Origin: Takakia lepidozioides
Lineage: Eukaryota; Plantae; Bryophyta
NCBI GenBank assembly: GCA_030704615.1
Contig: CM060732.1
Span: 1,302,001 to 1,366,000 of the forward strand
DNA: 64,000 bases
Reading direction: 5' to 3'
Made by a program: the position numbers and the translations under genes. A model generated the notes under the pieces. That model did not search any database. It saw only the letters and a list, made by a program, of their open reading frames with translations, and had not been told where the DNA came from. Below are positions 1-27,889 of this stretch, one piece after another; within the stretch, counting starts at the first letter, position 1; each line of letters starts with the position of its first letter.

Positions 1-54
1 TACCGAATGTTGTTTACAACACATGAAGTGGTGATTACTTTTAAACTTTGAACC

Positions 55-2998
55 TCATACCTGGGAGTCCGCAATTGGCTCCTCCGGTGACTCCTCAATC
101 AGCTCTTCTACAATCAGCTCTTCAGAACTTGGTACCCATCTAATGCCAACCCAAGTGCATCTTAATCTCCACAAAGCGTTGTGCGCTGCTGCGCTTGAGT
201 TTAAGGATGCTGCACGTCGAGCCTGAATTGCCTCCTCACCTCTAAGGCTATCAATGGCAACATTCGATTGAAGGCTTTTGTTTCTGAATCTATGTTGAAT
301 GATCCTGAACCAGTGTTCATAGGTCTGTACCAAAGGACTTTTCTTGCATTTTGTTCCAGCATGTTGAGTATGACGCTAATATGCCGCTTTTGCCGTGTGA
401 TGCGAGTTTTCCATTCCTTGACATGACCAAACAGATAGGCTTCCATACCTTTCAACAAACCACGGGGTGTGCTTGACCAATATGTGCTGCAAATTATCAA
501 CTTAAACAATTAGCATTGTCATCTATGTTATTTTACTACAAGCATTCCAATCAACTTGAACAATTAGCATTGTCATCTATAAGTGTTATAATTGAAATGC
601 AAAATTTTACTATAAGCATTCCAATCAATATCAAGAGATGTTGTAGATACTCACAATATAGTGTGTAACTAGACCCTCCCCCCAACTCTTGATGAAAGCG
701 CGTCCGAATTCCTCCACACATTTCTTATATTCAGCTTTTTGTCCACCGGCGATTGTAAGGCCAGAAAGATAGGGTCGCAATTTATCAAATGCAACCCAAC
801 ATGCTAATCGATTTCTCCTACATGCCCCATCTTCAGTGTGGTTGTGCTCGGACTTTACCACATCAATGTACAACTTGTCGGAGCTTCCCTCTAAAGTACT
901 CGGTTTAAAGAGTTTGGCAACATGTGGGCCACTGAACGAAGGTTTGTTGGGGATATTACTCAATTTGCCAGACAGTTGATCATCTTTCATGATCTTAACG
1001 AAACCACCGTGTGCACCAATGTTGGACAACACTTTTTCCATGTCAGCAATAGCTAACTCTTGTAATTTCTTATCACGAATGGTCCAGACGAACATGAAAT
1101 GGAGGTGGACCATTTTCTCAATGATCCTATTCATGGCGTGTAAAGTGCAAATATGCACTCTTTCAATGGGGATAGGCAACACTGGTTTCCAACGATCTTT
1201 TCCCTAACTCCCACTCACGGGTTTGGCAGTAATGTTTTGGGCAAATAAGCCTCCATTTCATGTATGGGAACGCTTACTAATAGCAGCAGAGGCGTCCTTC
1301 ATGGACCCCACTACAGACTTGACTCTCTCCTGCATGCAATAAATGCAAGAATGCAAACTATTTGCACCTCCCTTCAAACCGAACATGGCTTTTATTGTCT
1401 TCATGTCGGCTGCCATGTGCCACTCTACCTTGTAATCACCAAAACCTGGGACGTGAAGAAGTTGCCTATCTTCTTGGGCTTGAATTAGCGAAGGGAGTTT
1501 GGTTTGTTGGAACACCCAGTTCAGAACCTCTGTGTTCTCCTTTGCTTCTTGAAAACAAGCTATAGGCCAAATCTCTCTCTCACTTTGCACACTGAAAAAC
1601 TTTTCACTATCCGGAGTGATGGATGGGTCTAATGCACGGTTCATGAGGGTAATACTCACTCTTTCCAGCTTTTGGGCATGAATGACCTCTGCCTCATCAA
1701 GCTTCAAGACAAACTGTAGAGGGCTCCCCTTCAATTCTGTAAAATCAAAATCAAGCAATCAATACTAAGAATATATAAAAATAAGAATATTGTAAAGACA
1801 CTGAATTTATAGGTGCACGATATAGAAAACTTACCAACAAGTGTGATCTCGTACAATTCAACCATGGTGCGCTGCACCTGCTCCACATCCGCGAAAAAAG
1901 AGTTGTGCTCGGATAGTGTCACTCGAGTAGCCTCATTCTTTTCACCGTTCTTAACCTTTTTAGGAACTTCAAGGCTGTTGTTCAAGTGGTAGTATTCACC
2001 TACGAAATCCTGAAGCTTGGAGTTCAATTCCTTACGCAATTTTGACACTCGATGCGGATTGGGTAGACATCCTACTCTCATCCCTTTGGAGGCAACTTTT
2101 ACACCACCTTTAAACTTTTTGTAAATTGCACTGTAACCTGTTTGGGTGATCCCATTCCTGTCACACGTCTCCAAAATCTCACTGGGCCCAACCTGTTTGC
2201 CGATTTCATTGAGATATTGATTTGCCATTTTTGCACCTATGTGAGTAAAAGTAGGCACATGCAACATCGAATCTACCTCTGTCCTTGAGCGAAGACTTTT
2301 CCAAATTCTTCTTGGGAACTTCTATCGCCACAAAGCCTCTTGTTGTTGTTTGATGCAACGTTCTCTTGTTGCACTTTTCGTGCAGTAGCTGGCATAATGA
2401 TACTCCGCGCCAATCTTCTAAGCACCTTGGCTTGTCCACCATTTGGTGCAAGATTGTTCAGATCTTTCCTCTAGTGTATTTGGCTTCTAGGTCCATGTGG
2501 GGTGTTGCGAACCTTACTCAATTTTTGCTCCAAGCGAGTATAAGTTGTCCTAGACCTTGTGAGCTGCAACCTAAGGGATCTCAATTCGGACTTGTGGGAA
2601 CTCGCAATCTGATCTAACTCCATCGCATGAATTGATCGTACAGCTTCCAATTGAGCTTCACAAACACCATCCATTACACGAACTTCTTCTTCTTTATTTT
2701 GAACTTGTAACCGCAGACTATGCAGCCGACTCTCATATGAAGCTCTCATGTTGCTCATGTTGCTTTCCAGAGTAATGATCCGAGCACTCAATGAATCAAT
2801 CTCCACACTTTCTACTTGAACTTGATCCCTCAATTTTTGAATCTCTACTGCGCTTTGCTGTTGTGCAGCTTCGAATAGAATTCGCCAATTTGCGGTCTCT
2901 ACAGTGGTTGAGCAAACACTTTGAAGGTGTTTCACATAACCCAGAAAACCCTCCTCTCCATCTCCCACAAATTGAAGCATGTCTCTTATGAAGCTCAT
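55..2998 (-). pseudogene. Spliced RAG1/Transib-like DDE transposase with N-terminal coiled coil, inactivated
   Basis: Joining the ORFs through GT-AG introns 1834-1737 and 654-487 gives LKLDEAE (D at 1698-1696), WHMAADMKTIKAMFGL..SCIYC (D at 1407-1405 plus CxxC), ICTLHAMNRI and THYI/HILVKHTPWFVERYGSLSVWSCQGMENSH (E at 411-409). These parallel RAG1 GYDEK..CTLC, DALH and TNYFHKTLAH..GSIGAWASEGNES. In-frame stops at 2471, 1258, 1204 and 376 and a frameshift near 2285. The 5' end is uncertain. Confidence 0.8.
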
Positions 2999-3099
2999 GT
3001 TGGGACGTACTCCTGTAGCAGGGTCAATGGGATAAAGGGATGAATCAAGCCAGAGATCTATGTTCGTACCTCCTGCTCTCCATTTTTTAGGGCAGCAAA

Positions 3100-3410
3100 G
3101 CCGTGAGCAGAACCTGTGAGCAGATTCCTGGATGCGTGAGCAGATTCCCCGAAGCGTGAGCAGAATCAAAGCGTGAACAGATTTCGCGCTGGACCTCAAA
3201 ACCGTGGGAACAAGTGGGCCTATTTCCGTGGACGCCAACTTCACTGCAAAGACGCAGTCTCCGCACCATCGGACCGAAGACAAACAGGCTCCATGACGAG
3301 AAAGTGGCACGAATGCACGATGATACATTCACGGATGAATGGATTTGGGATGAACGTAAAAGTGTTATGGATGAATGTTGGATGAAGCACGGATGAGAAG
3401 TTGTCCAGAT
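3100..3410. repeat. Cluster of short GTGAGCAG motifs followed by GGATGA motifs upstream of the transposase
   Basis: About 5 GTGAGCAG/GTGAACAG copies at 3100-3180 and repeated GGATGA at 3330-3410. Similar motifs, partly inverted, occur at 13930-14165. Confidence 0.55.
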
Positions 3411-3439
3411 GAGGGGTCTATGAAGGACTGCATGAGCAT

Positions 3440-4045
3440 GTCTCCTGAGGGATCAACAAGCGCATGCACCAGGCATTAAGGTGTCTCAACGACATCTTAA
3501 ATCGCATGCTCAGCATGAGAAATGAACCCATGGAAATCGTTGCAAGAAGAAAAATGTGGCCTGGAAAAAATCATAGGGGGAGTTGTAACCCTTCTCAGGG
3601 AATGACGAATTAAGATGTCTTCAACGACATCTTAATCCCCTGCCCTCTTTGAACATGGGAATTTCACCAAACAGGATAAAACACAATATATATCTATATA
3701 TATCTATATATCTATATATATCTATATCTATATATGTAAGCCCAAAAATGGAGAAAGACTTGGGTTTACTTGAACAAAGTGGATCCATGAAAGTCTCTTG
3801 AGGGATCAGCAAGCGCATGCACCAGGCATTAAGGTGTCGTCAACGACATCTTAAATCGCATGCTCAGCATGAGAAATGAACCCATGAAAATCGTTGCAAG
3901 AAAAAAAATGTGGCTTGGAAAAAATCATAGGGGGGAGTTGTAACCCTGCTCAGGGAATGACGAATTAAGATGTCGTCAACGACATCTTAATCCCCTGCCC
4001 TCTTTGAACATGGGGAATTTCACCAAACAGGATCAATCACAATAT
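3440..4045. repeat. Direct repeat with ~353-bp offset, each copy carrying two 26-bp palindromes (TCAA loop orientation)
   Basis: 3440-3690 is nearly identical to 3793-4045. Palindromes at 3476, 3610, 3829 and 3965 (3965-3990 has perfect arms: TTAAGATGTCG TCAA CGACATCTTAA). A TA/TATC microsatellite lies at 3686-3735. Confidence 0.9.
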
Positions 4046-4056
4046 ATTATATATAT

Positions 4057-5571
4057 CCGACTGCATGTCACAAACAGCAATAGTCATAACTCGCCGGTAC
4101 GTAGGATCATACACATGACAGGCCATGGTCGTCCAATCCTTCACTTGCTTCACGTGATCAAACATTCCCAGGACTTATGAAGATCACCCCCGGCCTACAT
4201 TCTACGCACCAAGCTAACTCCAGAACCCTCCGCAACTGTGGACATCTTGAACAAGTATACTTTTTGGGACCCTTGTCCTGGGAAAACACTGTCCTGGATG
4301 AAGTCCTATCAACTTCTGCGCTTCAATTCTAGGATGATATCTACGTATCCTTTGTTGCCTGCCCCAGTCCTAAGGACGTTGATCTGATAACGAGCATTTG
4401 GAGAAGCCAATGTTGAGAAATGGTCCATCACAAAGTCAAGCGATGCACTATCAAACTGAGTCGTTGTCTCGTCCGACTCCCCCAACAGATGTTTCTGCAA
4501 GAACCTTTTGCTTGCTGCCATAGCAATGGCTGATGGTGATGCAGTGGGAGCATTTTGAAATTCTTGCTGAAGCAGCGAACGCACTGTGTCAACACTCTCC
4601 CTGCAATCTCCTCGCGACACTGGATGTGCATGGGTGCCCAAATGGATACAAGCCCGTGTGAGGTGGTTGATACGGTGCAACACGTAGTACATCCGTGCAT
4701 TGCATTCCGCCATGCACTGTGGCACGACTTTACAAAACTTGCAAACGACAGAACTGCTCTTTGGAGGAGCACACCCTACTTGAAATGGGTTGTCACAGAC
4801 TCCTTCCCACTCCGTCTCGTTTTCCACACCGGCCATTTGGAAATGCTGGCAATCCAAATTTGCACAACGCAAGTGCCCAACGCAAATGGATCTCCGAAAC
4901 TTTAGGCCATGCGGATTACAGATATTCGAAGTTTTAGTCCGACACCATGGGTGTACATCGTGTTTCTTGTCCATGCCCGCCATGAGTCCAGCCAAACCTC
5001 CACATGACGTCGGAGGTGGCAGTTCAAAAACGATGTCTCCATCAAAATCAGCGGGTAGAAATTTCGCTCTTTGGATCCGCTGTGTTTCCCAAACAATGCC
5101 TCTCACATCGCTCTTGCATCCTAGCAACCCTCTCAACGACTGCAACTTGGGAATGACACTAATGATCTCCTGGACATCGGGGTCCACCAGTATAGGAGGG
5201 TTCGTAGGACGAGGGACCTCTGTGACTTTGTCTTCTGAACTGTCCGAGAGGTCGACAAATGTCGTGGAGGTAGTTTCTTTTGTCTTGATGGGGACCGATT
5301 TTGGCGCCTGCACCACCAAAGCTGCTGTTCCGGGCGTGAGTATAGTGTCCGATGAAAGGCGTCTCTGATCTCCATGAACGCGGTACTTGGCGGGTGGAAC
5401 TCTCCACTCTCTTCGACCATCCCGTTTTTGCGGCTTTTGAACCTGTGTTCCCTCGACCTTCCCTCTACTATCGTACACCTCTCTAACCACATAGACGGTC
5501 CCTGGCTCAAAGCGGAATGTTATGCAAATCAAATCCTCCTCAACAACGGCCAGTCCATTGTCATCGGCCAT
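4057..5571 (-). pseudogene. GCM/WRKY-like zinc-finger plus MULE-like transposase, truncated after the first catalytic Asp
   Basis: ORF 4309-5655 contains CVGHLRCANLDC, CKFC and CNARMYY..IHLGTHAHP (GCM-like). Reading through stops and a frameshift gives DFIQDSVFPGQ..MFDHVKQVKDWTTMACHVYDPTYRRVMTIAVCDMQS, which resembles the MULE first-Asp region. The sequence then breaks at ~4057. Confidence 0.65.
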
Positions 5572-6710
5572 GGCGCTTAGGCGTGCAGAGGGGAGTACAG
5601 TATTACCACGTCTGAGGTGGGAGACATTGCGTGCATGGATTGGGGTGAAGCACACTGGACAATGTGGGGCGACTCCTCTTCTGTGTTCATACTATTTATC
5701 TTCGCACAATGTACTTTCTCCTTTCCATCATTCTCATGGTAATCATGCAGCATTTTGCCGCCATAGAAACAGCTGAGCAGTATTAAGAATTACGAGGGTG
5801 CGTTCAATTTTCTGACAATGACATATTTGCCACGGACAAACCCGCAGCCCATTCCATAACCCCTATGTAGGTCGAACACCAACTGACACCCACGGGTACG
5901 TGGTCTCCATACTGAGGTTCCACTAACAGGGCCCAGACCGGCAATGATGGTCCATACCAGTTGGCCATCACCAGCAATTCGAACAAGTCAATTAAGAGCC
6001 GTTTCTGTTTTATGGGAAAATCCCAAATGGATGATTTCGGAGATGAAACCCCAACTGCCGTCCATCCATCCATTTCCTAGACCCTAATGGAGTGTTGGAA
6101 GATGAGTGTCCCGTAAGTGTCATTTCGAACTATTCACACTGGAGCCTCCCAAGAACGTCATTGTTTCTGCAAAGAAGAGGTCGCGTAGGAAGTCTCTTTA
6201 CTACACGTCGGCGAGGCAGAGGTTGAAAGCGAGAGAGAGGATGAGGAAGACTCCGAGGGCGCTTGATCTTACCGAGGGGGAGAGCGATCGTGAAGGGGAA
6301 GGATCTGCTGGCGAAGGGTTATAGAATAGGGGAGTCGCGGAGCCGTCTGTGGACAAGCAGCTGGAGGAGCTTTTGGAACTTCCCCTTTTGCGTGAGGCTG
6401 GGATGGAAAGAATGCCACCTATAAGAGAGGAGGAAGGCATGCCAAGCAGTGATGTTACTCCTGTGCAGGAGGTCCTTACGAAGCAGGTGGCTGTGCATAC
6501 CCGGGAGCGCCCATCCAACATAGCGCTGTCTTTGCGGGCGTTGAAGAACAAGGCACAAGTGGGAGGCAACATGCAAGCAGTGGATTTGGAGACGGACAAC
6601 GCTGAACAGAGTCTCCTTCAGGTACCACCACCATTGCGATGCATAGTTCAGTTCGTTTTTGCATTGTTAGAGATGAAAACTGGTGGAGCCAGCGGAGTAT
6701 GCCCTGCATT

Positions 6711-6821
6711 TTAAGATGTCGTTGACGACAGCTTAATCTGCAATCACATCCTCACCGCCTTACCCTCCTCTCTATTTCCCACATGTTCCAATGCAGTGCC
6801 AAATTAAGCTGTCGTCAACAC
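6711..6821. repeat. Two palindrome copies (one partial, inverted) in the first intron of the ParB-MTase gene
   Basis: TTAAGATGTCG TTGA CGACAGCTTAA at 6711-6736 and TTAAGCTGTCG TCAA CAC at 6804. Confidence 0.8.
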
Positions 6822-7266
6822 AAGGCTTGATTTGTCGATCAAACAATGGGTGATGTTTTGCAGAGGAAACGGAAGAAAGCCTGGGAGAGTCTCCAGTTAC
6901 CAGCCAAGAAGAACGCACCAGACCAGAACTCTGAAATGGTCGTCAATGTGGTGAATGAAGAGGAGGTGCCAAGGGTTCACTCTCCGCAGCGGGCTGTGGC
7001 TACAGTGGAGCAGCTAGTGGACACACAGGCACGAGTGAAGGGGAAGGCACAAGTGCAAGGAACAATGCGACCTGCGGAGAAGGGGTCTTCCAGTGGCCGT
7101 CCAAAGCCTGCTAAGGTTCGTTCTAGCTTGCCCATTCTCATCTGTGAGGGTTGCTGTGAATCAGAAAAGAGGTCGATAAGTTCAAAGCCTGCCATGGTTT
7201 TTTGAAGCATAGAAGACAAGGCTGGTGGGTATTTCAGAGACTTTCATACGAACTGGAGGAGGCTGA

Positions 7267-9239
7267 TTAAGGCATCGTTGATGATACCTTAATCTGGTCA
7301 GCCATTCACATATTGAGGGTTTCTTTCAAACATAGAGGAACACGATTAAAGCACAAGTTTCCGCTTTATGAGTGGACAGTGAAGCAGAATGCAGAATGTA
7401 GATTAAGGCATCGTTGACGATACCTTAATCTGGTCTGTTATTCCCAGGGTTTCTTTGAAACAGAGACGAACAAGCTTACTGGTAGGCATACACGCTGGTG
7501 AGGGTTTCTGAAGCAGAATGAAACATGCAGATTAAGGCATCGTTGACGACACTTTAATATAGTCTGTCATTCCCGGTTTGAGGGTTTGAGTGGTGGGTAG
7601 TCTGCACAGTGAGGGGATAGCTGAAACAGAAATGAGGAGGGGAATTAAGGCATCGTTGACGACACCTTAATCTGGGAGTGGGAATCCGTTTAGCGAATAC
7701 TTTGATGCAGAGAGGAACAGGATCAGGAGTGGACATTATACACATTCAGTGGTTGTTTTCTTCTGAAATATGGAGGACGATTAAGGCATCGTTGACGATG
7801 CCTTAATCTGGCCTGTAAAATGTACGTAGACGCATAGTTTGAGGCAGAGATGAACAGGATTAGGGGTGGATAGTCTGCCTAGTGAGAGGAGTTCGAAACC
7901 AAAAATATGAGTGGTATTAAGGCATCGTTGACGATGCCTTAATCTGGAGTGAAAACCTAGTTTTGATTGGACTTTCAAGCAGAGATGAACAGGATCCAAG
8001 GTCGAGAGTATCAAAATTCAGTGGCTGTTTTGAACAGAAATAAGGAGGCAGATTAAGGCATCGTTGACGACACCTTAATCTGAACTGTCAAATACACTTT
8101 TCAGGCATACTTTGAAGCAGTTCAGAGACAGGATTAGTGGTGGATAGTCTGCACTTTGAGGGATGTCTTGAACATAAATGAAGATGCAAATTAAGGCATC
8201 GTTGACGATACCTTAATCTGGAGTGTAAAATCTGTTTCTAGGGATACTATGAAGCAGAGAGGAACACGATCAGGGGTTGAGAATATGCTCATTGAAGGGC
8301 TGTTTTAAACATAAACAAGGAGGCAGATTAAGGCATCATTGACGACACCTTAATCTGGCCTGTCAAACACTTTTCAGGCATACTTTGAAGCAGATCTAAA
8401 CATGATTAGTGGTGGGTAATCTGCACTTTGAGGGATGTCTAGAACATAAATGACGATGCGAATTAAGGTATCGTTGACGATACCTTAATCTGGAGTGTAA
8501 AATTTGTTTCTGGGGATACTATGAAACAGACAGGAACTCGATGAGGGGTGGAGAATATGCTCATTGAAGGGCTGTTTTAAATACAATCAAGGAGGTAGAT
8601 TAAGGCATCGTTGACGATACCTTAATCTGGAGTGTAAAATTTGTTTCTAGGGATACTATGAATCAGAGAGGAACACGATCAGTGGTGGGGAATGAGCTCA
8701 TACAAGGGCTGTTTTAAATATAAACAAGGAGGCAGATTAAGGCATCGTTGACGACACCTTAATCTGGCCCGTCAAAAAAACTTTTCAGGCTTACTTCGAG
8801 CAGTTTAGAGACAAGATTAATGGTGAGTAGTCTGCACTTTGAGGGATGTCTTGAATATAAATGAAGATGCGAATTAAGGCATCGTTGACGATACCTTAAT
8901 CTGGAGTATAAAATCTGGACTTCGATTCATAGAGGAAGAGGATGGGGTGTGGAGAGTAGTCACATTCAATGAGTGTTTTAAACAGAAATAAGGAGGCAGA
9001 TTAAGGCATCGTTGACAACACCTTATTCTGTCCTGTCAAATACAGTTTGATGCTTACTTTGAATCGGAGAGGAACAGTGTCATGGGTCCAGAGTGTGACT
9101 ACAGACGACAGCTTGATCTATGATATTATTTTGAATGTGGTATATACTTTGAAGCATATGAAGTGTACTTTTCAATAGGTGGGCGTGTTTAGAATCAGGG
9201 AGGAAGAGTCATAATAAGGCATCGCTAACGACACCTTAA
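7267..9239 (+). repeat. Array of 15 26-bp palindromes (11-bp arms, TTGA loop) at ~136-bp period
   Basis: Copies start at 7267, 7403, 7532, 7645, 7781, 7917, 8053, 8191, 8328, 8463, 8600, 8737, 8874, 9001 and 9214. Intervening ~110-bp segments are diverged homologues forming two roughly alternating types. Confidence 0.95.
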
Positions 9240-11044
9240 TAGTGGTCTGAATCTGTTGTGGGAAAACACAAATGAATGTAGAATAAAAGGAAGAAGGCAG
9301 GGGAAAGCCAGCCTGCACAGGAGACATCTGTTCCTGATACTCAAGATGAAGACCCATCTGACAATTACGAAGATAAAGTGCATTCATTGATGTATACCTC
9401 CAAGGTAAACTCCAGAAGGTCATAAATTCCATGGAAGTTCGGGACGGCACTCTTATGATTCCCCTATGCAGGATGATTTCCATGCCTGCCGCTTGTCCAG
9501 CCTTGCATCATGATATCAAGAAGCTACAGGGTGATTTCATCCACGGGTACTTGAAGGGCTCCGCAGTTTTTTACATTTCAGTAACAGACATCCAGGGATC
9601 AAACTGATTGACGAAGAGATTATGGCCAGTTGGGACCCGCTTTGGAATGAGGTGAATTCGGAGTTTGAGGCAAAGCTTTCCCATAACCCATTTCACATGC
9701 AGTACATGGGGAAGATGTTCTTCGTATGGGATGGTAATCACCGTTTGGTTGCCTGGATGGAATATATCACAAGAATGTATGTCGACGACAAAGACTGGCA
9801 CCACCGAGTTCTGTCAATGGTTTTGGATCCACAAGGCAAAATAACCCAACTTCTGACTGCCATGCACGATGTCAACAAGTAAGTTTTGTTTTGTTTCCTC
9901 TTTGTGAACTACATTTTTGTCCCTCGCTTCATTTCTTGTACTCATTTGCTTTCAATGCAGGGGCACGAAGACGTCACACGTCACCACGAACATAGTGCAT
10001 ACACTATTTCGGATGCAAAGTATAGGAGTCATGCCTTTGGAAACATTCTCCAGCGTCTTGTCTGCGGAGACACTGAAGAAATGCCAGACAATCAAGAAGT
10101 CTGAAGCTTGGTTCAATCTAACGAGGGAAGCTTTCCTCGAGTACTTGTACGCGGTAAGACTAGTTTCTTGTTTGTCTTGAGTTATCTTTCATTTTTGGTT
10201 TGAAGTTGTCCCTACATGGCCTGACATGTAATAATAAGCCACCGTTCTTGTGTCACAGCAAGAAATTGCGGATGCTGGAGAGCGAGCGAAGCTGGAGTAT
10301 TATGCCACTACTCCGGAGGAAGAGAGAACAGCGAATGGGGTGGAGACCAAATGAAAGATGAGATGGATACGGCAAGGAAAAACCTCAAAAGTGCGTTTGA
10401 CAAGCACATACGAATTGCTGACCCTGGGCTGGGAAAGGGGTTTCTGGAGCAGATTCGGATACACTGGAACAAGCCCACCAAGCCTGAGATGACACAGGAA
10501 AAGATCCACCGTCTGTCGATTTCCATGGTTGAGCCGGCTCAAAAAGTGAGGTGGCTCGAAATCTGGAACTCGGATCCAATCGTCCGGGACACAAATAATT
10601 TCCCAAAACCGCATAGGGACCCTGAGACAGGAGTGGTGACACCAGTGAGCGACCGTGCAATTGAGACATGGTTGCACAAAGCCACCTTCTGGAGCCAGGT
10701 AAGAATTTCCAAACGTTCCACATTGTTCGCAATGACTTCACTGTTTTTATAGTTGAACCACTGGACATATGGTCGTTCTTTTTGCAGCTGGAGAAGCGGG
10801 CCATTGAAATAAGTCACTACTAGACTACAAAATCACCATGACATCTCCCAGCATCAAGTTTGAGTCCTACGTTCGTAAATGGAGAAGAGAGCTCTGGAAG
10901 TATGCATTTTTCCGGGAGTTCGAGAAGGAGGGAGGGATTCTTCGATGTAAAGATTTCGATCATCAGTACAACGGCAAGGAGGCAATGAAACGTCTGCTGT
11001 ACAGGTGTGTGCACTGACCCATTTCTCTTTCTGTGAGGAGGAAA

Positions 11045-11414
11045 TTACGGTGTCGTCAACGACACCTTAATTTGCGCATTAATTGGCCCATATCCTGCTT
11101 ACAGTGGACCTTGTGGGACTTTCATCTTGTAAGGGGGTTTGATTTAAGGTGGCCTCAATCTCTGCAGCATTGTCCCTACTTTCAATTGCAATGCAGTCTT
11201 GTGCAGTTTTGTATTGTGTCATTCTCTTATTTGATTGCTATTTGAGAGATGGAATTAAGGTGTCGTTGACGATACCTTAAATCCATGCCCTCTTGGGATG
11301 GGTTTGCCATGAAGGGGGATCTTACATGGTCTGATTGTTTGGAAAATTGGCAACATCAGTTATGGAGTCCTGCCTCTTAGTGCCTGGATTAAGATGTCGT
11401 TGACGACACCTTAA
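11045..11414. repeat. Three palindrome copies in another intron of the ParB-MTase gene
   Basis: 11045-11070 (TCAA loop), 11255-11280 and 11389-11414 (TTGA loop), all inside intron 11005-11503. Confidence 0.85.
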
Positions 11415-12059
11415 TCCTCAGAGTGAAATGCAGCCATTTATGGCAGTTCAATGCCATTTCTGTTGCGTTCAAGGATAAAGCGGGATGGTCTTATTGTCTG
11501 CAGGTACTTTTGCTTTGTTCTTATTGCGGAGAACACACTGAGTGAGGATCCAGACTTCATTTGTGGATGGGCGAACCCAAACGATGAAACCACAATGTAC
11601 ACTGCTGGCATTGTGAAGGACTGGGGTCGGGCACATTACCATGACTGTGGGTGGTACGTGGATTGCCCCAGAGCTTCGACTCCCTGGGAGGAGAATGTCA
11701 TGAGGAATCAGAACGAGAACGCAGATTCACTGGCCCCCCGGACAGATGAGGAGTTGCAGCAAAGAGCCTTGGCGCTACTGAATAAGAAGGAGCCTACAAA
11801 ACCGGCCACCCCTGCTGACGGCAAGAAGAAAAAGAAGGGGAAACAGACAGTGGATGCTTCAGCGGCTGCTGGGGTTGCTAGGGAAGCAGTGGTAGACCCT
11901 CCTGACACTGCTAGGCCAGCTGGGGGTTTTGTAGATTTGACTGTGCCCAATAAACAGCAGACACAGGTCGCCATCACATCCACCGCGGTAGATCGGCGCA
12001 GTACACACATAGCAAAGAAACGCCCTTATGGAGCACAGCTGTGTATGTCCAGGGTGGGT

Positions 12060-12423
12060 TTGCATGCCTTGGAGTACCTGGAATCAACATTAGGGCCGCA
12101 AGCTGGGCAGGCCTTGTATCCCCCGTGTGCGCATCCTGCTAGCAACCCATAAGCTGGAAAGTCGTGGATTGACCACATCAAGATGGCCCTCATGCGAAAT
12201 GACTGTTGCCCCACTAGGCTACTTCCATCCAATGCCTCCACACCAACTTCCCACAACAATTTCAGCTCATCCACAAGGGGCTGCAGATAAACATCTGCAT
12301 TGTCATTTCCCACAGATTGTGGTCCAGGAATCAATAAAGCCAACATCGTGAAAAATGGCTTAGTACACAGCCATGGTGGAAGATTATAGTTTACCAACAT
12401 GACAGGCCAAGTTGACCATTTGT
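12060..12423 (-). mobile_element. CACTA/EnSpm Tnp2-type transposase fragment
   Basis: STWPVMLVNYNLPPWLC..MLALLIPGP..DVYLQPLVDELKLLW..RAILMWSIHDFPAYGLLAG..ACPAC is the canonical Transposase_21 core. Confidence 0.9.
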
Positions 12424-14639
12424 TTGATTTCATCCTTGACATCCCAGATGGGCTTCCAGTGCCTGATATCATTCCCACAGATGTGACTCCAGCCTGGAAT
12501 GCTCATAATCCACTTTATTGGCAGTGGGCCTTCTCTTTCAGCAGCAAGTTTCTGTCTGACGCTGGGTCGCTTTTGATTTTCCAGGGTGAGGACATGGCAT
12601 CCCGCCGGATGCTTCACAGCTACATGAAGTCCTCGGGGTTCAAAATCCGCAAAATTTGGACCCGTGTCAACACCCTGCCACTATCTAGTGCAGAGTTTTC
12701 CGGGCAGAAGGTACTCTCCTGGGCTTTGTTGTGTGTTATTGTTTCGTGGAATTGCCCTTAACAACGTTTCTAACATTGGTGCTGTTGCAGACACATGTGT
12801 TCAAGGCCATTTGTCTTGCTCAAATTCGGCCAGACACCACTCTTGCTCATGTTGGCCATCGACGTTTGGGAAGGGGGGCTTCACATAGACCCGGAATGCG
12901 ACCCTGTGGAATCCGATGTTATCCACAACTATGTGGACTCCTCCCAGACATTGAAAAAAACTGGTGGCATTCCATGGAGAGGTGCTCGGGAGAAGTCACC
13001 CGCTTTCATGCAGACTTTGATTGAGACATGTAGCCAGCATGGTGGGAAAGTGGTGGACCTGTCCATGGGAACAAGTTGGTGCCCAATCAAATTCCATTTC
13101 TTGGGTGCACTTCTTTGCCTTCAGATTGTGCTTCTTGCTTTGTTTCGTGGATCCATTTGCACTGTTGCAGGGGCTTCCTTCCATGCATGCAAGTATGCAG
13201 GCAGGCATTTTTTCAGGATGGAAGGGGACGAGCAGCTCTACTCTCAAGTCATCGCACCTTTGTCTGGGGGTTCATCGCATTCGACCCAAAGTGAGAACAT
13301 TGTTGTGGAGCCGGATCTGCAAGAGCCCGATGCTCTGGATGTTGATTCTGATTTCTCATGTGAGTAAGTGCTAGTTCAGTTGTGGCAATTCACTGACACG
13401 ACGGCGCATCCTTCCATTTCCATCTTTCCTGCACAAGTTGGGCCAGCTGAATGTATATGGACTTACATTGTTTGTTTGTGTGTACAGGAGCCCAAGGTCG
13501 CCACGGTTCCTCCCTTTCTTTGCAAACCCGCAATTTTTCCCAAGTCCGAAAGCAGATTTTAAATTGCCATGTTATGTGGAGGCTGCAACTTCGGAATTTA
13601 GTCTCCTCTCTTCTCCCCCTGGTTTGCTTTTAAACAGAGAGGGTTTTGTGCAAAGCAGGGCTAGTGTCTTCATAGACAGTTCTGCCTTCGTTTTGGACGC
13701 CGACTCCAGTAGCACAAAATATTCTTCGTGGAATGAATCTTTAGTTATTAAACAATTTACTTTGAAGCACCAAATGGCCTCTCCACCTTCTTTGCAAATG
13801 TGTGTCAGCAACTATGTCGACTTTTGATTGCTGATGAAAGGACAATCACAACCCTCACCAGTGGGCAGAAGTTCACTCTAGAGGTAGGGGGATTTAGCAA
13901 CCACTACTGAAAAATGCATCTTAGTTTTGCATTCATCTAGAAACTACATTCATCCATGTACCATTTGTCGAACATCCTTTCATCCCCCATTCATTCATCG
14001 TTCATCCATAACGATGAATGACGTATGCATGATATACTTGACACAACCCGCAGTAATAGGTCCTCTAGGCCGAATAGGTGTCCGCGGTTATAGGTGAGCA
14101 CATGCAGATCCGTGAGCAGAATTTTGCTCACGGAATTTTCTGCTCACGGAATTTGCTCACGGTTTAGCAATCCCCTCCATTTTTTGGGGAAGTTTGACTT
14201 CGGCGTCTGCTCCTCTAGTAATCGGCCTCTCAAAATCAACGGTGCATACTTTCCATCAATTGCAACCTGCCCGTTATAAGGAGGTTGCTTGCTCAACGAC
14301 AAATTCGTGATCTCCGACAATGCAGGTAACAACTCAAATTCTCACTCAGACATGGGGTCAATAAAAGGCAGTATCAATTTGTTAATTCCTTGGAATTGTT
14401 TGACTAATGGAATGCTCCAATTTCACAAAGTTGTGAGGTTTTAGGAATTGCCTGAAGTTCAGATGCTGATCGCACGACTGGATATGGTATGGGACCGGCG
14501 GTAACACTTCATAAAGTGTGGCTTCTGTTATCTGATACAAATACCGAAGTTTATTTGATTTAGCTTCAATTAACTTATTATAAGTTGAATTTCAATTCAA
14601 ACTTATTTGACTTTATTTATCCTCAAATGTGAAACAGGT

Positions 14640-17600
14640 GTTTGTTGACACAGGTGTCCACCTACTCTCGGCCCATTGTTCTATGCCCCGATGTACCAGA
14701 TGAGGTCCTCCCCAGTGCCTTCACCATCACCATAATGCAGCTTGAATCAGAGAGACTTCCGGTCTTTTTAAGCTGGCCAGCAGCTTGTCGAGCTCCTCAT
14801 GATAAGTGTCCTCTGCTGTACAATTACAAGCATACTTTTTAAATCACTTTCAACAGGAGGGACATGTTATCAGAAACAAGGGTAGAGATATTCAACTGCT
14901 TGCTCTGCTCTCTACTGGTTTCTATGAAAAATCTGAACTGGGCACGGGGTCTATGGCCATAAGGCAACGTCTCATGACTACATTCTATTATAGCACCAAC
15001 AGATATGATTTGACAAACCCTGGGTTCTGACAGATTACTCACAAGTCAAGAGTCCCCCCCACATGTGTATGCTTGAGAGCTTCATTGTAATTTTGCTCAT
15101 GGGCCTAGATGATGCAAGCAGTCAGCAGCAACGTAGGATTGCATGTGACTCAGGCTTGCATTCAGCCTGGATTGCATATGGCTGTGCATAAAAAGATAAC
15201 GGAATTTGAAATTAGGAAACGCAGGTCAACATGAAACAACAGGAAACATCAACTAGGGTCTGATGTAAGTAACAAAGGTTGGTGGACAGAAGTTGCTGCG
15301 TTTGCCAACGCATACCATCAACCAGGCATCATAGTAGCGCATTATGAATTCCAGGACTTCAGACTTTGTGGCTTCTTGAGCAAATATCTGCTTTCAAAAT
15401 TGTAATGATTACAAGTTGCCATCTGGAGCTATGTAAAAAGCAGACATGTGGAAGGTAGTAGGGAACAAAAGATACCTGTCATCTCATCAAGAATGGCAGC
15501 TGAAGTGCAGAGGACTTCATCTCTGTCACTGCTTGTTAACAAAGTCTTTTGCTGAAACTGCCATATTCAACCAAACTGCCCCATGATGAACCATTTGCTC
15601 TAAAACATCTATACTTTACAGGTAAGCAGCGAACAAGCAATCCTTAAAACATAGCACCTCAACCAGAGGCTGCCAGTCCCTTAATCAATCAACACCGCCG
15701 TAACTTCGCTGGTCACATGGATGCACATGTGCTCAGACTTCTGCAATCATGCACTCAATGCTACCCTAAGGCAGGGAATAACACGTCACTTTGTTGGGTA
15801 GTTGCCACCAGGCATAACTGGAACTCTATAGCATACCTCCCTCGCTCCAAAGTACAGCACATTCCACTTCACAGAAAACAGAAAATACATACACTCACTG
15901 CATATTTTTTCTCTACTACAGGATTGAGAGGAAATCCTGAGACAAATCCACCATGGCGGTATCAACCAGTCTACTGAATCCACAGCATGCTGCAAATGAA
16001 CATAATCCAACATCATTGAGTAACAATCAGGTAACAAGGCTCAAGAAGAACATGACAATAATAATTTTGAGATCAAGACTGTGCTAATTTATTTTCTTTG
16101 CAGAGAAACGGAGAGGTGATGCTCCAAAAGCAAGCACTTCTGTGTGAAAATGGAGCAACCTTCAACACTTCGCAACTGCAGCGAAAAGAGTAGCCAATGG
16201 ATTGAACAAATAAGTTAAGCTAAAACATAATTCTGATCAAAACAACTTGCAAAGCCAAGGCAATGGGTCTCAGTTCTGACTCCATTCATGTGACTGGATT
16301 CCAATGCATATTTCAATCACTACTTAACTCGAGAACCTTCCTGACTTGATCTACTAACCTCAAAAATGGCAGATCACACTACGAATCAACTGCAACTTAT
16401 GACTGCATCTCTGAGTTCTTCGGATACACTGCAACAAAAAGGTGATAACAGTTCACCTTTGACTGCTATTTCTCAACATCTTAGAGCTCCTGCAGACTTC
16501 CAAGTTCAGGAGCTCTGCCAGCTGAGCATCGCTCCGATGAGCTACAGTGATAGAAACAAATCCAGGGAATTATAGTAATTACTACAATTATTGCTGCGAC
16601 CCTGCCAATCAAAATCACTGCAAACCAGTAAAGATCCACCCAGCGATCAGCTAACATACAAAATTCACATGCAAAATCAGGGACATTCTAATGAGAGGGA
16701 AAATCAGGCTGAAATAGGTTGAATACTTAAGGGAAAGGTTGAAGAGACAAATATGATGGGAGAGCTGTAAGAGAATATCTGAATGACGAAAGAGCTGGAA
16801 TACCTGCTAGCAACTGATGTCTTACGTGTGGGCGCTGGACATATCCAAGAGTGTGTGAACTGCTGGGTGGCACTGGATTCGCCTTTGGCAGTAGTGAAGC
16901 ATCGCTTGCAATACCTTAATAAGGAACCATTACTATGCCGGCCATCTACCTTTTTCCGCAGCCTTGAGCTGCATTAGAGTGACTATTTGGATCTGTTGTG
17001 GCGGAAAACTGCAAACTTAGCTGGCAAGGCTTAGTGAAATTGGGAACTATTGGACGCACACTGGGACGTATGAGAGGGCACGTTGAACACACCGGCCAAG
17101 TCTCAAAGCGAACGAAAATCATTTGGATGGGCAACCATCCGTTGGCCCATTGAACAAATTTCGATTGATCTCATATTACTTTGGGGCCTCTTACATGGTA
17201 CATTGAACATACTGGCCAAGTCTCAAAGCGAACCAAAATCATTTCGATGGCCAACCAGCCGTTGAGCCATCGAATGAATTTTGATTGATCTCATATTAGT
17301 CCGGGACTTGTGAGAGGATGTCTCAAACGTACTGGCAAAGTTTGGAAGCAAACAAAAATGATTGGGATGGGCAACCATCCGTTCACCCGTTGAATGTACT
17401 CCGTTGGATCTGCTATTACTTTGGGACCTGTTGGACTGTGTTTCGCGTGTTCATGTTTTTTTTTTCATTCTGTTTTTTAATGGGGCATGTAATGACTCCA
17501 TATGCAACGTGCGTGCCAAATTTGGGAGCGATCAAAATTCATTTGGACCCAAAACCACAGTTTCTTCCCTATTTTGCACTCCAAACTTGTTTTGTGTTCT

Positions 17601-20150
17601 ACTTCATGCACTCTTCATAAAGAGTTCTGCAATAGTGAGCGAAGAGAACACTTTTTTTTGGGGGGCATTTTTTATTGGTCCAAATTTTGGCAGGGGAGTA
17701 GCAGTGGGATGCTGGAAGCCGCAGAACAAAATTGAACCAAAAACAAAATCAATGCGTGCCAGAAACCCCCAACGAAAGGCAGTGCAAACTATTTATTGGC
17801 TTAAAATTAATTTAAATTCAATTAAGTTCTGGAATGGCTTGAGGGGTGAGCGCGTCGATGGGGAGGCAAATGATTTATTCGTCTATTGTGTCTCCGAACA
17901 TATGTTGCACACATGTTCAAGCACATGCGGGCAAAAGATGGGCTTCAACCCATCCGTTCAATGGGTGCAATAGTCGTGCACGCATTGCAGGATTTTTTTT
18001 CTCGCAATGAACAAAAACCAGATGACAACTGAACGCCTCATTGGCCCATCAAACAAATTTCGATTGATCTCATATTACACTGGGACGTATGAGAGGGCAC
18101 GTTGAACACACCGGCCAAGTCTCAAAGCGAACGAAAATCATTTGGATGGGCAACCATCCGTTGGCCCATTGAACAAATTTCGATTGATCTCATATTACTT
18201 TGGGGCCTCTTACATGGTACATTGAACATACTGGCCAAGTCTCAAAGCGAACCAAAATCATTTCGATGGCCAACCAGCCGTTGAGCCATCGAATGAATTT
18301 TGATTGATCTCATATTAGTCCGGGACTTGTGAGAGGATGTCTCAAACGTACTGGCAAAGTTTGGAAGCAAACAAAAATGATTGGGATGGGCAACCATCCG
18401 TTCACCCGTTGAATGTACTCCGTTGGATCTGCTATTACTTTGGGACCTGTTGGACTGTGTTTCGCGTGTTCATGTTTTTTTTTTCATTCTGTTTTTGAAT
18501 GGGGCATGTAATGACTCCATATGCAACGTGCGTGCCAAATTTGGGAGCGATCAAAATTCATTTGGACCCAAAACCACAGTTTCTTCCCTATTTTGCACTC
18601 CAAACTTGTTTTGTGTTCTACTTCATGCACTCTTCATAAAGAGTTCTGCAATAGTGAGCGAAGAGAACACTTTTTTTTTGGGGCATTTTTTATTGGTCCA
18701 AATTTTGGCGGGGGAGTAGCAGTGGGATGCTTGAAGCCGCAGAACAAAATTGAACCAAAAACAAAATCGATGCGTGCCAGAAACCCCCAACGAAAGGCAG
18801 TGCAAACTATTTATTGGCTTAAAATTAATTTAAATTCAATTAAGTTCTGGAATGGCTTGAGGGGTGAGCGCGTCGATGGGGAGGCAAATGATTTATTCGT
18901 CTATTGTGTCTCCGAACATATGTTGCACACATGTTCAAGCACATGCGGGCAAAAGATGGGCTTCAACCCATCCGTTCAATGGGTGCAATAGTCGTGCACG
19001 CATTGCAGGATTTTTTTTCTCGCAATGAACAAAACCAGATGACAACTGAACGCCTCATTGGCCCATCAAACAAATTTCGATTGATCTCATATTCTTTGTG
19101 ATCTGTTTTTGGATACTTCCTGTTGCCACATTGGCAGTAACATGTAAAAACATTCCGAACAATCATAGATCCATCCAATGAGTTAATTTGCAAAATTGAA
19201 CTTGAGAATTAGGGACGACTATAATAAGAGGGAAAAACAGGCTGAAATGTGTTGAAGAAGGTGCCTTTATGAGCAGTGACCATGCACCATCCACCCCTGC
19301 TGGTCTCTTGTAGCTATTGATCCACAGGGAATCATAAGTAATCTTGTGTTGAATCTGCCAACAAGATAAAGAAGCAAGAGGCAGAAAGGTTACCAGTCTT
19401 GGAGTATGTCGAGGCCCCCAGCCACAGTATAGGTGTGTTACTGCTGCTGCCGCTCCCACTTCACCATCCACCCATGCAGGTCTCTTGTAGGTATTGATCC
19501 ACAGGGAATCATAAGCAATCTTTTGTTGAATCCGCCAGCGAGATTAAGAAGCAAAAGGCAGAAAGGTTACCTGCCAGTCTTGAAGTATGTCGAGGCCCCC
19601 ATCCACCACCAGAGTACACAACGCCGGCACCCGTGTTCAATTCAACTTTCCGATATGGATAGATCGTTATAGCGGCAGAAGTTCTCCAAGGACACACGAT
19701 CTGCACTCGCGAGACCGAGAATGCACACAGACGGACACAAGAAGGAGACGGCGACAGGATCCGAGATTAGCAGGCCACAGTTTTGACACACCAAACAGCA
19801 TGAAACAGGCCTGCCAGATTAAGCCCGGGCACATCCCAGGGCATGATGTTATGATCTCATCAGCAGCCTCCCCTTGGAACTGTTTGTCTTCCTCGCGAGC
19901 TTGAAGCAGGATCACATAGCTACCAAAACAGAGAGAAAAAGAGAGGGAGTGTAGAGGAATTCGAAGCAAGCGAAAGATTAACATTTTGTACCTCTACAGC
20001 GGCCACGCCCCCGCATACGAAACCCGACGTCTTAGTGAAAAAGTCGCGCTGTCTTGAATGCAGCCGTGCCCTGGATAAGAAAGTGAGAAGAAAGTTATTG
20101 CATGCTGATGATGTCCACTGCGACTACTAAGTGACACCCTGTGATCGTGA
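14640..20150 (-). pseudogene. Decayed multi-exon gene, possibly a sigma-70-like paralog
   Basis: Many small GT-AG-bounded segments. The last one reads EELDKLLASLKRPEVSLI(fs)LHYGDGEG..MGRE*V (sigma region 4-like). Others read SDAQLAELLNL, LQLIRSV and MLWIQ*. Numerous stops. Confidence 0.3.
17058..19093. repeat. Near-identical 1019-bp tandem duplication with internal ~120-bp subrepeats
   Basis: 17058-18076 is repeated from 18077. The internal unit ends in AAATTTCGATTGATCTCATATTA. Confidence 0.95.
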
Positions 20151-20949
20151 GCTTCAGGTATCGACGATGCACACTGGAGACTAACTGGAGACTAACTGGA
20201 AGCGTACAAGATGGTAAAACGAAAAGAAAGAAAGAAGACAGTTTTTAGCTCGGATAAGAGGATACCCAGGGAGACCGTCGCAATGACATCGCAAGTAGTA
20301 GGCAGAGCGAGAGGAGCACTGACATCTCAATCATTTTGGAAAGAATAATGAACTACAATGAAGAACGATGGCAGCAACGCGCGAGAAGAAGCGCGAAGAA
20401 GGGGGAAGAAGGGGGAAGAAGCGCGAGAAGTGGGGGACCGCGAGAACCCGACGCTTCCTGCGTGAACATCATCCTTCGTGGAACCCATTTTGCCACCATT
20501 TTGCCACGATGACAAGATGACATTTTAAAAATCGCTGCCCGTCTTGAGCGGCTATAGGGGACATATGAACGTTGGAACAGCCTTTCTTTGGCCTCAATTT
20601 TTTCTAATGGAAGGTCTTTCGTGACTGGGAGGTATGACTTCGGACGTTTAATCTCACGTCCACACATGGAGTCAAATTATGCAGGATGGGGGTGGTCGTT
20701 ATGAAACATATGACTTCCATGGCACACTCTGGATACTGCACGTGGCACGAGCATGGGTGAACACGAGGGGTGAAAGTGACACGTGGTGGAGGCTTTGTGG
20801 ATGGGAGGTAGTCGTGTACATGACCATAGTCATGGGCGTGACTCTAGCAGCATTGAGACATGAAAGCACCATTGAAAGCACACGAAAACACCATTGAAAC
20901 ATGAAAGCACATTTGAAATTGGAACATCGATTCAAATACAACGTGACTT

Positions 20950-25378: not shown

Positions 25379-27889
25379 CCCGAGCTCCAGGAATGCTAAT
25401 TTGTGAGCCTGCTCATGAGCTCACGTGAGCCTGTGAGCTTGCTTAGGCTCATGTGAGCTTGGGAAACGGCCGGCCCCATAACCGCGGGTGTTTCACCTAA
25501 TTCCGTGGATTTCTGTCACGTGGCCGTTGAATCGTGCATAGAAAATGAAATGCAAATCCCATAACCGAGTATTGACCGAATATTGACCAAATATTGACCG
25601 CAATCAGTATGTGAAAGAAAAAATGGATATGGAAAATTTGATGCCCCAGTTACAAGAAATGTGGTGGCCCTCTTGAAAGTCATTTGTCTTCTCCAATATA
25701 TATATTATGTCAAATTTTGTTGTATGAATGAAGTTGCAGACATCTTCAACTAAATGAAACTGACTTTGAACCAGCCATCAAAGGCCTTAACAATATGTAA
25801 ATACAAAAGTCATCCTGACTCGGAAGATGAAGACATACTAGTAGAGCTATCTCATGCAAGAACTGCAATATCATTTATGAATAATCTAGCCCGAGAATAG
25901 GAATGTCCACGCAAGGGGTCGGAGGAGAGTGGAAAAGGCGAAGGATACATGGACAGCTCTTTCGCCATTGCCTCCGCATACACAAGCAGCTGGTAGGAAT
26001 GTGGTGGACTTTGAAGAAACGTTTGGGAAAGCGAAAATGGCACCATTCATGTGGCATCAAATAAACTCCTGCAAGACAACAAATATTGAGCAGGCTCTCA
26101 AAAGAGATACCGCAGTGTGGCCCCCCTTTTTGAGCCACCATAAAGCCTTTCCAGGAGGAGAGATATTCTGTGGTAGTTGAAGCCCACATAATATATGTGT
26201 TCATGACAGACTCTATGAAACTATTTGTCTCGGGGAAACCCTACTATCCTCCATGCAATGTGGCCCTCATTTTCTTTTTATTGCTTCATAATGCCCTACG
26301 AGGAGGAGAGGTTTTATGTGGGTGTTGAAGCCCACATAATATCTCTCTGTCAATTAGAGGCAGTATGACCCTCATTTTCTTTTTATTGCTTCATAAAGAC
26401 TTGCCAAGATGAGAGATATTATGTGGGTGTTGAAGCCCACATAATATCTCTCTGTCAACCAGAGGCAATATTGTGGCACTCATTTTCTTTTTATTGCTTT
26501 ATAATGTCTTACCAGGAGGAGAGGTTTTATGTGGGTGTTGAAGCCCACATAATATGTCTCTGTCAATTAGAGGCAGTGTGGCTCTCATTTTCTTTTTATT
26601 GCTTCATAAAGCCTTTCCAGGAGGAGAGATATTACGTGGGTGTTGAAGCCCACCTAATATCTGTGTCCATGACAGACTATATCCTGAACTAAGATATCAT
26701 GTACTTCCAGGGCACTGACCCTTTTCCAATTGAGTACCACTATGATGGAAACCACGAAGATATTTTATCTCTTATTGCATGTCTTCAATATGCATAATTT
26801 CCCGTGTTTTTTTTAATTTCATTTGATGATATTCTGAAATAGTTTAATTACTCATTTTGGATGTCCTATTGTTTTTGCAGTCATTGCCTGTTATATGGGC
26901 GTTGATGCCCACATAATTCGTGGACCTCCCGCAAGTCCTCCAATGACAAAAAACAAAAAAAAAACAAAAAAAACAACCAAGACTTTCAAAAAACAATTAC
27001 TATAAAATGTGAGGACTTATGTGGGTGTTGACGCCCACATAATTCGTGGACCTCCCGCAAGTCCTCCAATCCAAACAAAAAAAAAAAAAAAAACCTAAAT
27101 TTTTCAAAATATTTTAAATATAAAATATGAGGACTTATGTGGGCGTTGACGCCCACATAATTCGTGGACCTCCCGCAAGTCCTCCAGTGACCACCCAAAA
27201 AAAAAAAAAAAACCCTTAAAATTTTCAATTATTTAATATAGAGTATGAGGACTTATGTGGGCGTTGACGCCCACATAATTCGTGGACCTCCCGCAAGTCC
27301 TTGAGTGACCACCCAAAAAAAAAAAAAAAACCCTTAAAATTTCCGATTATTTAATATAGAGTATGAGGACTTATGTGGGCGTTGACACCCACATAATTTA
27401 TGGACCTCCCGCAACTCCTCCAATGACCACCCAAAAAAAAAGAAAAAGAAAAAGAAAAAAAGACTTACGTGGGTGTTGATGCCCCATAATTCGTCAATCT
27501 CCCGCAAGTCCTCCAATGACACAATAAAAAGCAAAACTTTCAAATTATTTTGGAAAAAAAACAAAAACATATCATAACATAACATAGCTTTGTGAGGTCT
27601 AGGATTTATGTGGTCGTCACGCCCACGTAAGTCCTCACACCTGATTATAGGCACATAATGAATGCACCAATACGATTCCAATTTTCCAAAGGACACTGCT
27701 GGTATTCTCGCGGGAATAGGTCTGCCTTTGTCCTCGGGTATAGGCCCCATTTCTAATCCTGCACTACTCTGCGCTCACAACCACTAAGCGTGACGCCCAA
27801 GCTAACGCTTAGTGGGTCAAGCGTGAGCCTGGGCTCATAGGCTCACGTGAGCAGGCTCATGGCGTAGCTTCCCTGCCCGAGCTCGGGCA
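25379..27889. mobile_element. Non-autonomous element with imperfect inverted ends carrying the second palindrome array
   Basis: CCGAGCTC..TGAGCCTGCTCA..TCACGTGAGCCT at 25379-25460 is mirrored at 27820-27889. Flanked on both sides by L1 remnants. No TSD was recognised. Confidence 0.5.
26166..27630 (+). repeat. Second palindrome array: 12 copies of TTATGTGGGCG-TTGA-CGCCCACATAA
   Basis: Copies at 26166, 26314, 26419, 26527 and 26632 (~105-bp unit); 26891, 27017, 27135, 27253, 27371 and 27465 (118-bp unit with A-tracts); an inverted degenerate copy at 27606. Confidence 0.93.

Follow-up and report, generated by a model that had tools for sequence, protein, structure and literature searches.

Introduction

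Lanisha was described as a new superfamily of DNA transposons that move by cut and paste, from the moss Ceratodon purpureus (Carey et al. 2021, PMC8245031). It is also documented in Repbase Reports (Maumus, McDaniel & Carey 2020) and under GenBank accession MT647524, and Repbase holds a member represented by a fern complementary DNA (cDNA). According to Kojima (2025), the motifs discussed below are common to the whole CMCT clade, Lanisha included; the termini within this clade are mostly CA…TG and the target-site duplications span 2–5 bp. In the tree from the same study, Lanisha (a fern cDNA, a fungus and a coral) falls outside a 100%-supported Transib clade and is placed beside Chapaev with weak support. 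The locus considered here is a transposase gene at the left end of a 64-kb stretch of the moss Takakia lepidozioides (contig CM060732.1, positions 1,302,001 to 1,366,000), referred to throughout as the window.

A first-pass annotation of positions 55–2998, made from the sequence alone, described an intron-containing RAG1/Transib-like transposase and raised the prospect of a new plant lineage that would bear on the ancestry of RAG. From the present analysis, the stretch is likely to be a transposase gene in decay, one copy from a multi-copy cut-and-paste DNA transposon that occurs in bryophytes, ferns and green algae and is most probably Lanisha. The likeness to RAG1 and Transib holds for the fold and the layout of the active site, and not for membership of the Transib superfamily.

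Organization of the transposase gene

All gene and exon coordinates refer to the window, with the transposase gene read on the minus strand, and searches were run either with single exons of the window gene or with natural intact relatives. The first catalytic aspartate is found within LKLDEAEV at ~1700. It is followed by AADMKT…SCIYC at ~1410–1335, where 19 residues lie between the aspartate and a C-x2-C pair, and by HICTLHA at ~1150. The D-x19-CxxC and TLH motifs had been equated with the D708/C727/C730 and H795 regions of RAG1; both motifs are present, but the distance from the aspartate to the cysteine pair is one residue off that of RAG1. When the intron at 487–654 is removed, the remaining part of the active site reads HILVKH-x13-W-x5-E (486–400) with a spacing identical to H937/H942/W956/E962 of RAG1, exactly as had been proposed. 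A 36-residue query from this segment (window:379-486:-) retrieved RAG1 chains for 13 of its 16 PDB matches, including the first 11. The best RAG1 alignment was gapless over 27 residues with 11 identities (E = 0.41) and is not significant on its own.

The intron at 487–654 is skipped exactly by contigs of two public runs of the same organism that are presumed to be RNA (X6 and X7), with CT..AC ends on the plus strand. The same joint is not listed among the DNA contigs of X1 or X5. Gene predictions for two relatives, P0007 and P0013, are split at the same codon (THYI/M|VS), and the last exon aligns to residues 761–889 of the intact relative P0190 as well as to the C-terminal exon of the relatives. 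The contigs that skip the intron derive from paralogues that are ~93–95% identical to the window copy; these presumed RNA runs suggest that the paralogues are transcribed and that the intron is removed correctly. The intron at 1737–1834 was placed from its splice signals and from the continuity of homologues (MV.FY…G.L.FV.KLDE) across a change of frame from -3 to -2. A third interruption at 1183–1260 had also been taken as an intron; however, it consists of two nonsense mutations, P0007 is colinear through it, and contig 27 of X7 runs across it without a break. The annotation of a land-plant DDE transposase gene with introns is upheld, as is the presence of the core fold of RAG1 and Transib in its family (see below).

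Contigs of X6 and X7 also skip 81 nt at window 1367–1447, with non-canonical ends and loss of the second catalytic aspartate. A deletion carried by a transcribed paralogue is the probable cause, as opposed to splicing.

An intact enzyme would be ~900 residues long, beginning with a conserved N-terminal box and continuing with a coiled coil, a helical region presumed to bind DNA and a catalytic core of the RAG1 type. The core would consist of an RNase H fold bearing D…D…E, into which a zinc module of C-x2-C and H-x4-H is inserted. By analogy with related systems, the enzyme may bind and nick the CATTAG…CTAATG inverted ends described below, and the element could then be released by the hairpin chemistry of the RAG, Transib and hAT enzymes.

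Relatives and sequence-level comparisons

With the catalytic exon as query, an exhaustive HMMER search returned 214 relatives below E = 1e-3, the majority of which are fragmentary. A profile search then provided intact, intron-free proteins of 898–901 residues (P0190 and P0192) on contigs of 3–5 kb; the two clusters comprise 25 and 62 sequences, respectively, several of which are full length. Both proteins contain all of the blocks of the window gene in a conserved order. In a tblastn comparison, residues 404–889 of P0190 were placed on window 1719..133 in a single frame, and identity over the catalytic core was 35%. Residues C528, C531, H586 and H591 of P0190 vary little or not at all across the family alignment. 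Among the named relatives are the ferns Adiantum nelumboides and Ceratopteris richardii and the green alga Pyramimonas. Within the Takakia material, run X1 contributed 353 DNA contigs that match window positions 1–3400 with at least 90% identity, and the transposase family is therefore multi-copy. A search for paralogous copies elsewhere inside the window found none.

One further relative, P0028, is a predicted protein of 6841 residues on a 205-kb ENA contig in which 14 separate stretches match the catalytic exon. Either the gene was called wrongly or the contig contains an array of transposase fragments. Tao et al. (2022) reported 39 plant Transib-like proteins; these are located on small scaffolds of angiosperms and do not evidently belong to the family of the window gene.

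The zinc-site motifs of the CMCT clade are found in the window as SCIYC and HILVKH. Pfam scans of each exon and of the intact relatives returned coiled-coil noise and nothing to RAG1, and hidden Markov models built from the family (A2) and from its C-terminal exon (A7) had no matches among PDB sequences; the profile search for RAG1 that the first-pass annotation suggested was thus negative for both databases. Transposase_21, Transpos_assoc, DUF4218 and DUF4216 were likewise without a Pfam match in the window exons and the intact relatives at E values up to 10, and the N-terminal box and coiled coil had no Pfam match either.

Predicted fold

The natural intact relative P0190 was folded with the family alignment as a stand-in for the window gene. 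The AlphaFold2 model of residues 175–898 had a predicted local distance difference test (pLDDT) score of 77 and a predicted template modeling (pTM) score of 0.70, and the model of the core (residues 365–790) had a pLDDT of 88 and a pTM of 0.88. When searched against the PDB with Foldseek, the top 48 matches were all chains of RAG1, BbRAGL or HzTransib (E = 3e-10 for RAG1 and 1.4e-5 for HzTransib), with Hermes next at 1.4e-2. A VIA-align comparison of the long model placed 445 residues on RAG1 with a Z score of 15.9, such that model residues 84–672 correspond to RAG1 474–1008; the part of the model aligned from RAG1 residue 474 onward matches the helical region of the window gene at 1835..2300. 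An exhaustive VIA-align comparison of the core model with 48,161 PDB representatives gave a Z score of 17.4 for RAG1 over 355 residues (RAG1 545–967) with a root-mean-square deviation (RMSD) of 4.4, followed by BbRAGL (16.2), HzTransib (13.5) and the P element (8.9). All others scored 6 or less. Since the PDB contains no CACTA transposase, this ranking is unable to separate a RAG1-like protein from a CACTA-like one.

A fold search of the ESM Atlas with the same core model widened the comparison. The top matches were unnamed clusters from rotifers and Streptophyta. Clusters of vertebrate RAG1 matched with template modeling (TM) scores of 0.67–0.70 (RMSD 4.0–4.3), and Transposase_21 clusters from plant and fungal CACTA/EnSpm elements matched with TM scores of 0.66–0.68 (RMSD 4.6–4.8). 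The latter include plant CACTA proteins with Transpos_assoc and DUF4218. In a language-model search, RAG1 supplied the nearest named clusters, a result that is considered a lead and not a test. In its predicted form P0190 has the fold of the RAG1 core, namely an RNase H domain with an inserted ZnC2/ZnH2 module and a C-terminal domain, and this fold is not exclusive to the Transib/RAG1-like superfamily. The models thus offer a structural demonstration that the bryophyte and fern family is predicted to have the complete architecture of the RAG1 core.

Termini of the element

Three copies of a related element were found in one ENA assembly. They are 97–98% identical to each other and have 49% protein identity to the window gene; two of the three were measured at 19,358 and 18,382 bp. 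The copies have imperfect inverted ends of 25 bp, CATTAGAAAACTTT…AAAGTTTTCTAATG (CATTAG…CTAATG), and the transposase gene, oriented inward, begins at a distance of 640 bp from the left end. With this CATTAG…CTAATG pair in the three relatives, and a possible CATTAG end at window position 20609, the termini have the 5'-CA…TG-3' form of the CMCT clade. All three complete relatives start with CATTAG(A)AAAAC and lack a CAC heptamer like that of a recombination signal sequence. A target-site duplication was seen in none of the three (flanks gacc/tttg, ccat/gaat and gttt/atag). The terminal inverted repeat starting with CAC and the 5-bp duplication that had been anticipated for a Transib-like element are accordingly both missing from these complete relatives. 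The other open reading frames of the 19-kb elements have no Pfam match and no kelch domain and, therefore, these elements contain no RAG2-like partner. None was first noted beside the window copy either, whose downstream flank falls beyond the edge of the window.

A second and more diverged element of this kind is represented by its right end (…GTTTTCTAATG) at L006:1492-1516, located 3.4 kb from the first.

In the window, the candidate terminus at 20609 agrees with the relatives' terminus CATTAGAAAA at 10 of 10 positions, with patchy similarity beyond; ~0.006 such sites would be expected by chance in 6.4 kb. A CATTAG at 14404–14409 is a weaker alternative for the 5' end. Of two other CATTAGAAA sites, at 33944 and 31843, neither aligns with the 20609 candidate beyond the motif and both were treated as chance occurrences. 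At the DNA level, the window and the relative L001 share only 165 nt at 70% identity and the relatives are therefore unable to define the ends of the window's own element.

Between the start of the transposase and the tentative end of the element, window 17058–19095 is occupied by a 1019-bp tandem duplication (98–100% identical) with arrays of a 120-bp unit.

A nested foreign transposon and decay of the window copy

The gene had been thought to extend to 2998. Instead, it runs to 3077, is interrupted by an insertion of 11.09 kb, and resumes in the segment listed in Table 1. Thirteen contigs break at 3089 with flanks that are unlike each other, and DNA contig depth rises about 10-fold at 3079–3400. 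The insert is bordered by exact copies of an 11-bp target-site duplication, a length typical of Mutator-like elements. Its inverted ends are of the GGG… type, reading GGGCAGCAAAGCCGTGAGCAG and, at the other end, the reverse complement of GGGATTGCTAAACCGTGAGCAA. Subterminal GTGAGCAG repeats occur in opposite orientation at the two ends, and GGATGAA repeats are also subterminal. Excision of the insert together with one copy of the duplication restores the reading frame exactly, with the 3077 side running into 14186–14305. Here KYAPLILRGRLLEEQ of the window lies 16 residues ahead of IDLW; it aligns with RYAPVIKRGVVLDDQ of the relative L003, where the distance to IDLW is also 16 residues. The restored frame is the decisive point in placing the 11.09-kb element inside the transposase coding region.

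A 26-bp palindrome is found at 17 sites, every one of which lies between 3610 and 11414. From this distribution, the palindromes, a cysteine-rich open reading frame of 448 residues (4312–5655, minus strand) and a gene of the ParB/methylase type belong to the insert. Pfam provided no name for any open reading frame of the nested element, and none of these frames has a homologue in the 19-kb elements of the relatives. The palindromes, the ParB gene and the 448-residue frame were consequently rejected as parts of the RAG1-like element, being inside the insert and absent from the relatives' elements. The stretch from 55 to 13367 is made up of two nested, unrelated transposons and is not one new element.

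The window copy of the transposase is unable to make protein. Four in-frame stops are present, a TGA at 1258–1260 and TAG codons at 1204–1206, 376–378 and 2471–2473. At 1258 and 1206, paralogue contigs have C and G on the plus strand, which correspond to TGG and CAG on the coding strand, and the TAG at 376–378 occupies the site of a glutamine in the relatives. Between ~2400 and ~2300 the reading frame also shifts (-1 to -3), and no ATG is found where the relative has its start codon. It is the combination of the four stops, the frame change, the lost start codon and the 11.09-kb insertion in the N-terminal coding region that leaves this copy dead.

Two features further along the window are recorded here. 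Tandem arrays occupy 26166–27630, and every one of their 105- to 118-bp units is organized around a palindrome, …TTATGTGGGCGTTGACGCCCACATAA…, distinct from the one in the nested element; the arrays may mark another element of the same kind as the nested one. An open reading frame of 579 residues at 44661–46397 (minus strand) with a CCHC zinc knuckle (Pfam E = 4.5e-6) is probably a retrotransposon gag gene.

Table 1. Positions of the transposase gene, the nested transposon and element termini in the window, with the complete copies of the related element
Feature	Position	Strand	Details
Last exon	58..486	-	143 codons; H-x4-H, W-x5-E (catalytic E) and conserved C-terminal tail; natural stop at 55–57
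Intron	487..654	-	168 nt, GT..AG, phase 0
Catalytic exon	655..1736	-	first D (LKLDE), second D (AADMKT), C-x2-C, H-x-C-x2-H, helical insertion domain
Intron	1737..1834	-	98 nt, GT..AG, phase 1
Helical region upstream of the RNase H core	1835..2300	-	matched in frame -3 by P0190, P0191 and P0192 (tblastn)
N-terminal region	2301..3077	-	conserved box GGTNIDLW…YPIDP…GFLGY (~3065–2930), then coiled coil to ~2500
Left copy of 11-bp target-site duplication CTCCATTTTTT	3078..3088	.	right copy at 14175–14185, exact match
Nested foreign transposon	3089..14174	.	~11.09 kb; unrelated to the RAG1-like element
First ~40 codons of the transposase gene	14186..14305 (end ~14305)	-	severed from the remainder by the insertion; no ATG left
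Tentative 5' terminus of the RAG1-like element	20598..20609	-	reads CATTAGAAAAAATTGAGG
Complete related copy	L003:7406 to L004:17682
Complete related copy	L002:7430 to L005:16891
Complete related copy	L001:7407 to L006:4902

Identity of the element

The multi-copy status of the family and its homologues in ferns and green algae are consistent with Lanisha, without being specific to it. Several points weigh against the preferred reading as a whole. The assignment to Lanisha was made by host, copy number and motif class, with the family set beside MT647524 and the Repbase Lanisha by descriptions only. The 3' end of the window's own element lies outside the window and neither end is confirmed within it. 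The surroundings of the catalytic glutamate are poorly modeled (pLDDT = 33–41) because few C-terminal sequences are available, and the RNA status of runs X6 and X7 is a guess. Lastly, the 2–5-bp duplication reported for the CMCT clade is absent from all three complete relatives, a small sample. Transib duplicates 5 bp of its target and CACTA 3 bp; the lack of any duplication fits neither and is unexpected for DDE cut-and-paste elements of this clade.

It is unlikely that the family forms a genuine plant lineage within the Transib/RAG1-like superfamily, as a sister group of Transib or nested in it, with consequences for RAG ancestry. Among solved structures, good matches are limited to RAG1, BbRAGL and HzTransib; the nearest named clusters of the language-model search are from RAG1 and not CACTA; the H-x4-H-x13-W-x5-E spacing is that of RAG1, with a gapless alignment of 27 residues; and the RMSD to RAG1 clusters is slightly lower than to CACTA clusters. 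Yet the PDB ranking does not discriminate in the absence of a CACTA structure, and the TM scores to Transposase_21 clusters are practically equal to those for RAG1. Together with the missing profile matches, the CATTAG termini in place of a CAC heptamer, the lack of a 5-bp duplication in all three copies and the position of Lanisha outside the Transib clade of the published CMCT tree, this leaves the specific assignment to Transib or RAG unsupported. An ordinary plant CACTA/EnSpm transposase of the TNP2/TnpD type would account for the clade-wide motifs, for a fold near the Streptophyta clusters with Transposase_21, Transpos_assoc and DUF4218 (TM = 0.66), and for termini that begin with CA and end with TG. 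It is nevertheless very unlikely given that the four CACTA-associated Pfam families are without a match even at E values up to 10, that the termini read CATTAG and not CACTA with no 3-bp duplication seen, and that the N-terminal box and coiled coil have no counterpart in Pfam.

A separate deep lineage of green plants, nearer to Transib and RAG1 than to CACTA and integrating its 19-kb elements by blunt or near-blunt strand transfer without a target-site duplication, is rather improbable; if true, it would be a hitherto undescribed variant of RAG-type transposition chemistry. The introns of the family and the splicing seen in presumed RNA contigs could suggest a host gene domesticated from such a transposase. 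For the window copy this is refuted by the broken reading frame, with its four stops, frame change, missing start codon and 11-kb insertion, and the copy is one of hundreds that are 90–99% alike, so that domestication must be regarded as extremely unlikely.

With Lanisha as the preferred identity, little is added to the question of RAG ancestry. The fold and the zinc-site motifs are common to the whole CMCT clade, including plant CACTA, and a moss superfamily of such elements has already been named and published (PMC8245031). The analysis contributes the RAG1 core architecture as modeled for a bryophyte and fern family; the ends and size of complete relatives, namely CATTAG…CTAATG and ~19 kb with no visible duplication; and the resolution of the window stretch into its two transposons.

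Comparison with known systems

RAG1, the RAG1L protein of ProtoRAG, and Transib (PDB: 4wwx, 6b40, 6pqn) share with the family a predicted core fold that extends from the dimerization region to the C-terminal domain (Z = 13.5–17.4), a DDE triad, and a C2H2 zinc module with identical H-H-W-E spacing. In contrast, there is no significant sequence or profile similarity to these proteins, and the distance from D to CxxC is 18 residues in RAG1 (D708–C727) and 19 in the window gene. The termini of the relatives are CATTAG and not the CAC heptamer, and neither a 5-bp duplication nor a RAG2-like partner was found. Unlike RAG1 and Transib, the window family also has an additional N-terminal box and coiled coil, spliceosomal introns and elements of ~19 kb.

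Compared to CACTA/EnSpm elements (TNP2-type, Transposase_21), the family differs in having no Pfam match, another terminal sequence and no 3-bp duplication. At the same time, the predicted fold is equally close to these transposases and to the fungal EnSpm/Plavaka proteins (TM = 0.66–0.68 over 363–366 residues), and the motif set and the CA…TG termini are the same. Like Lanisha, the element to which the window gene belonged is probably a multi-copy cut-and-paste DNA transposon from a moss.

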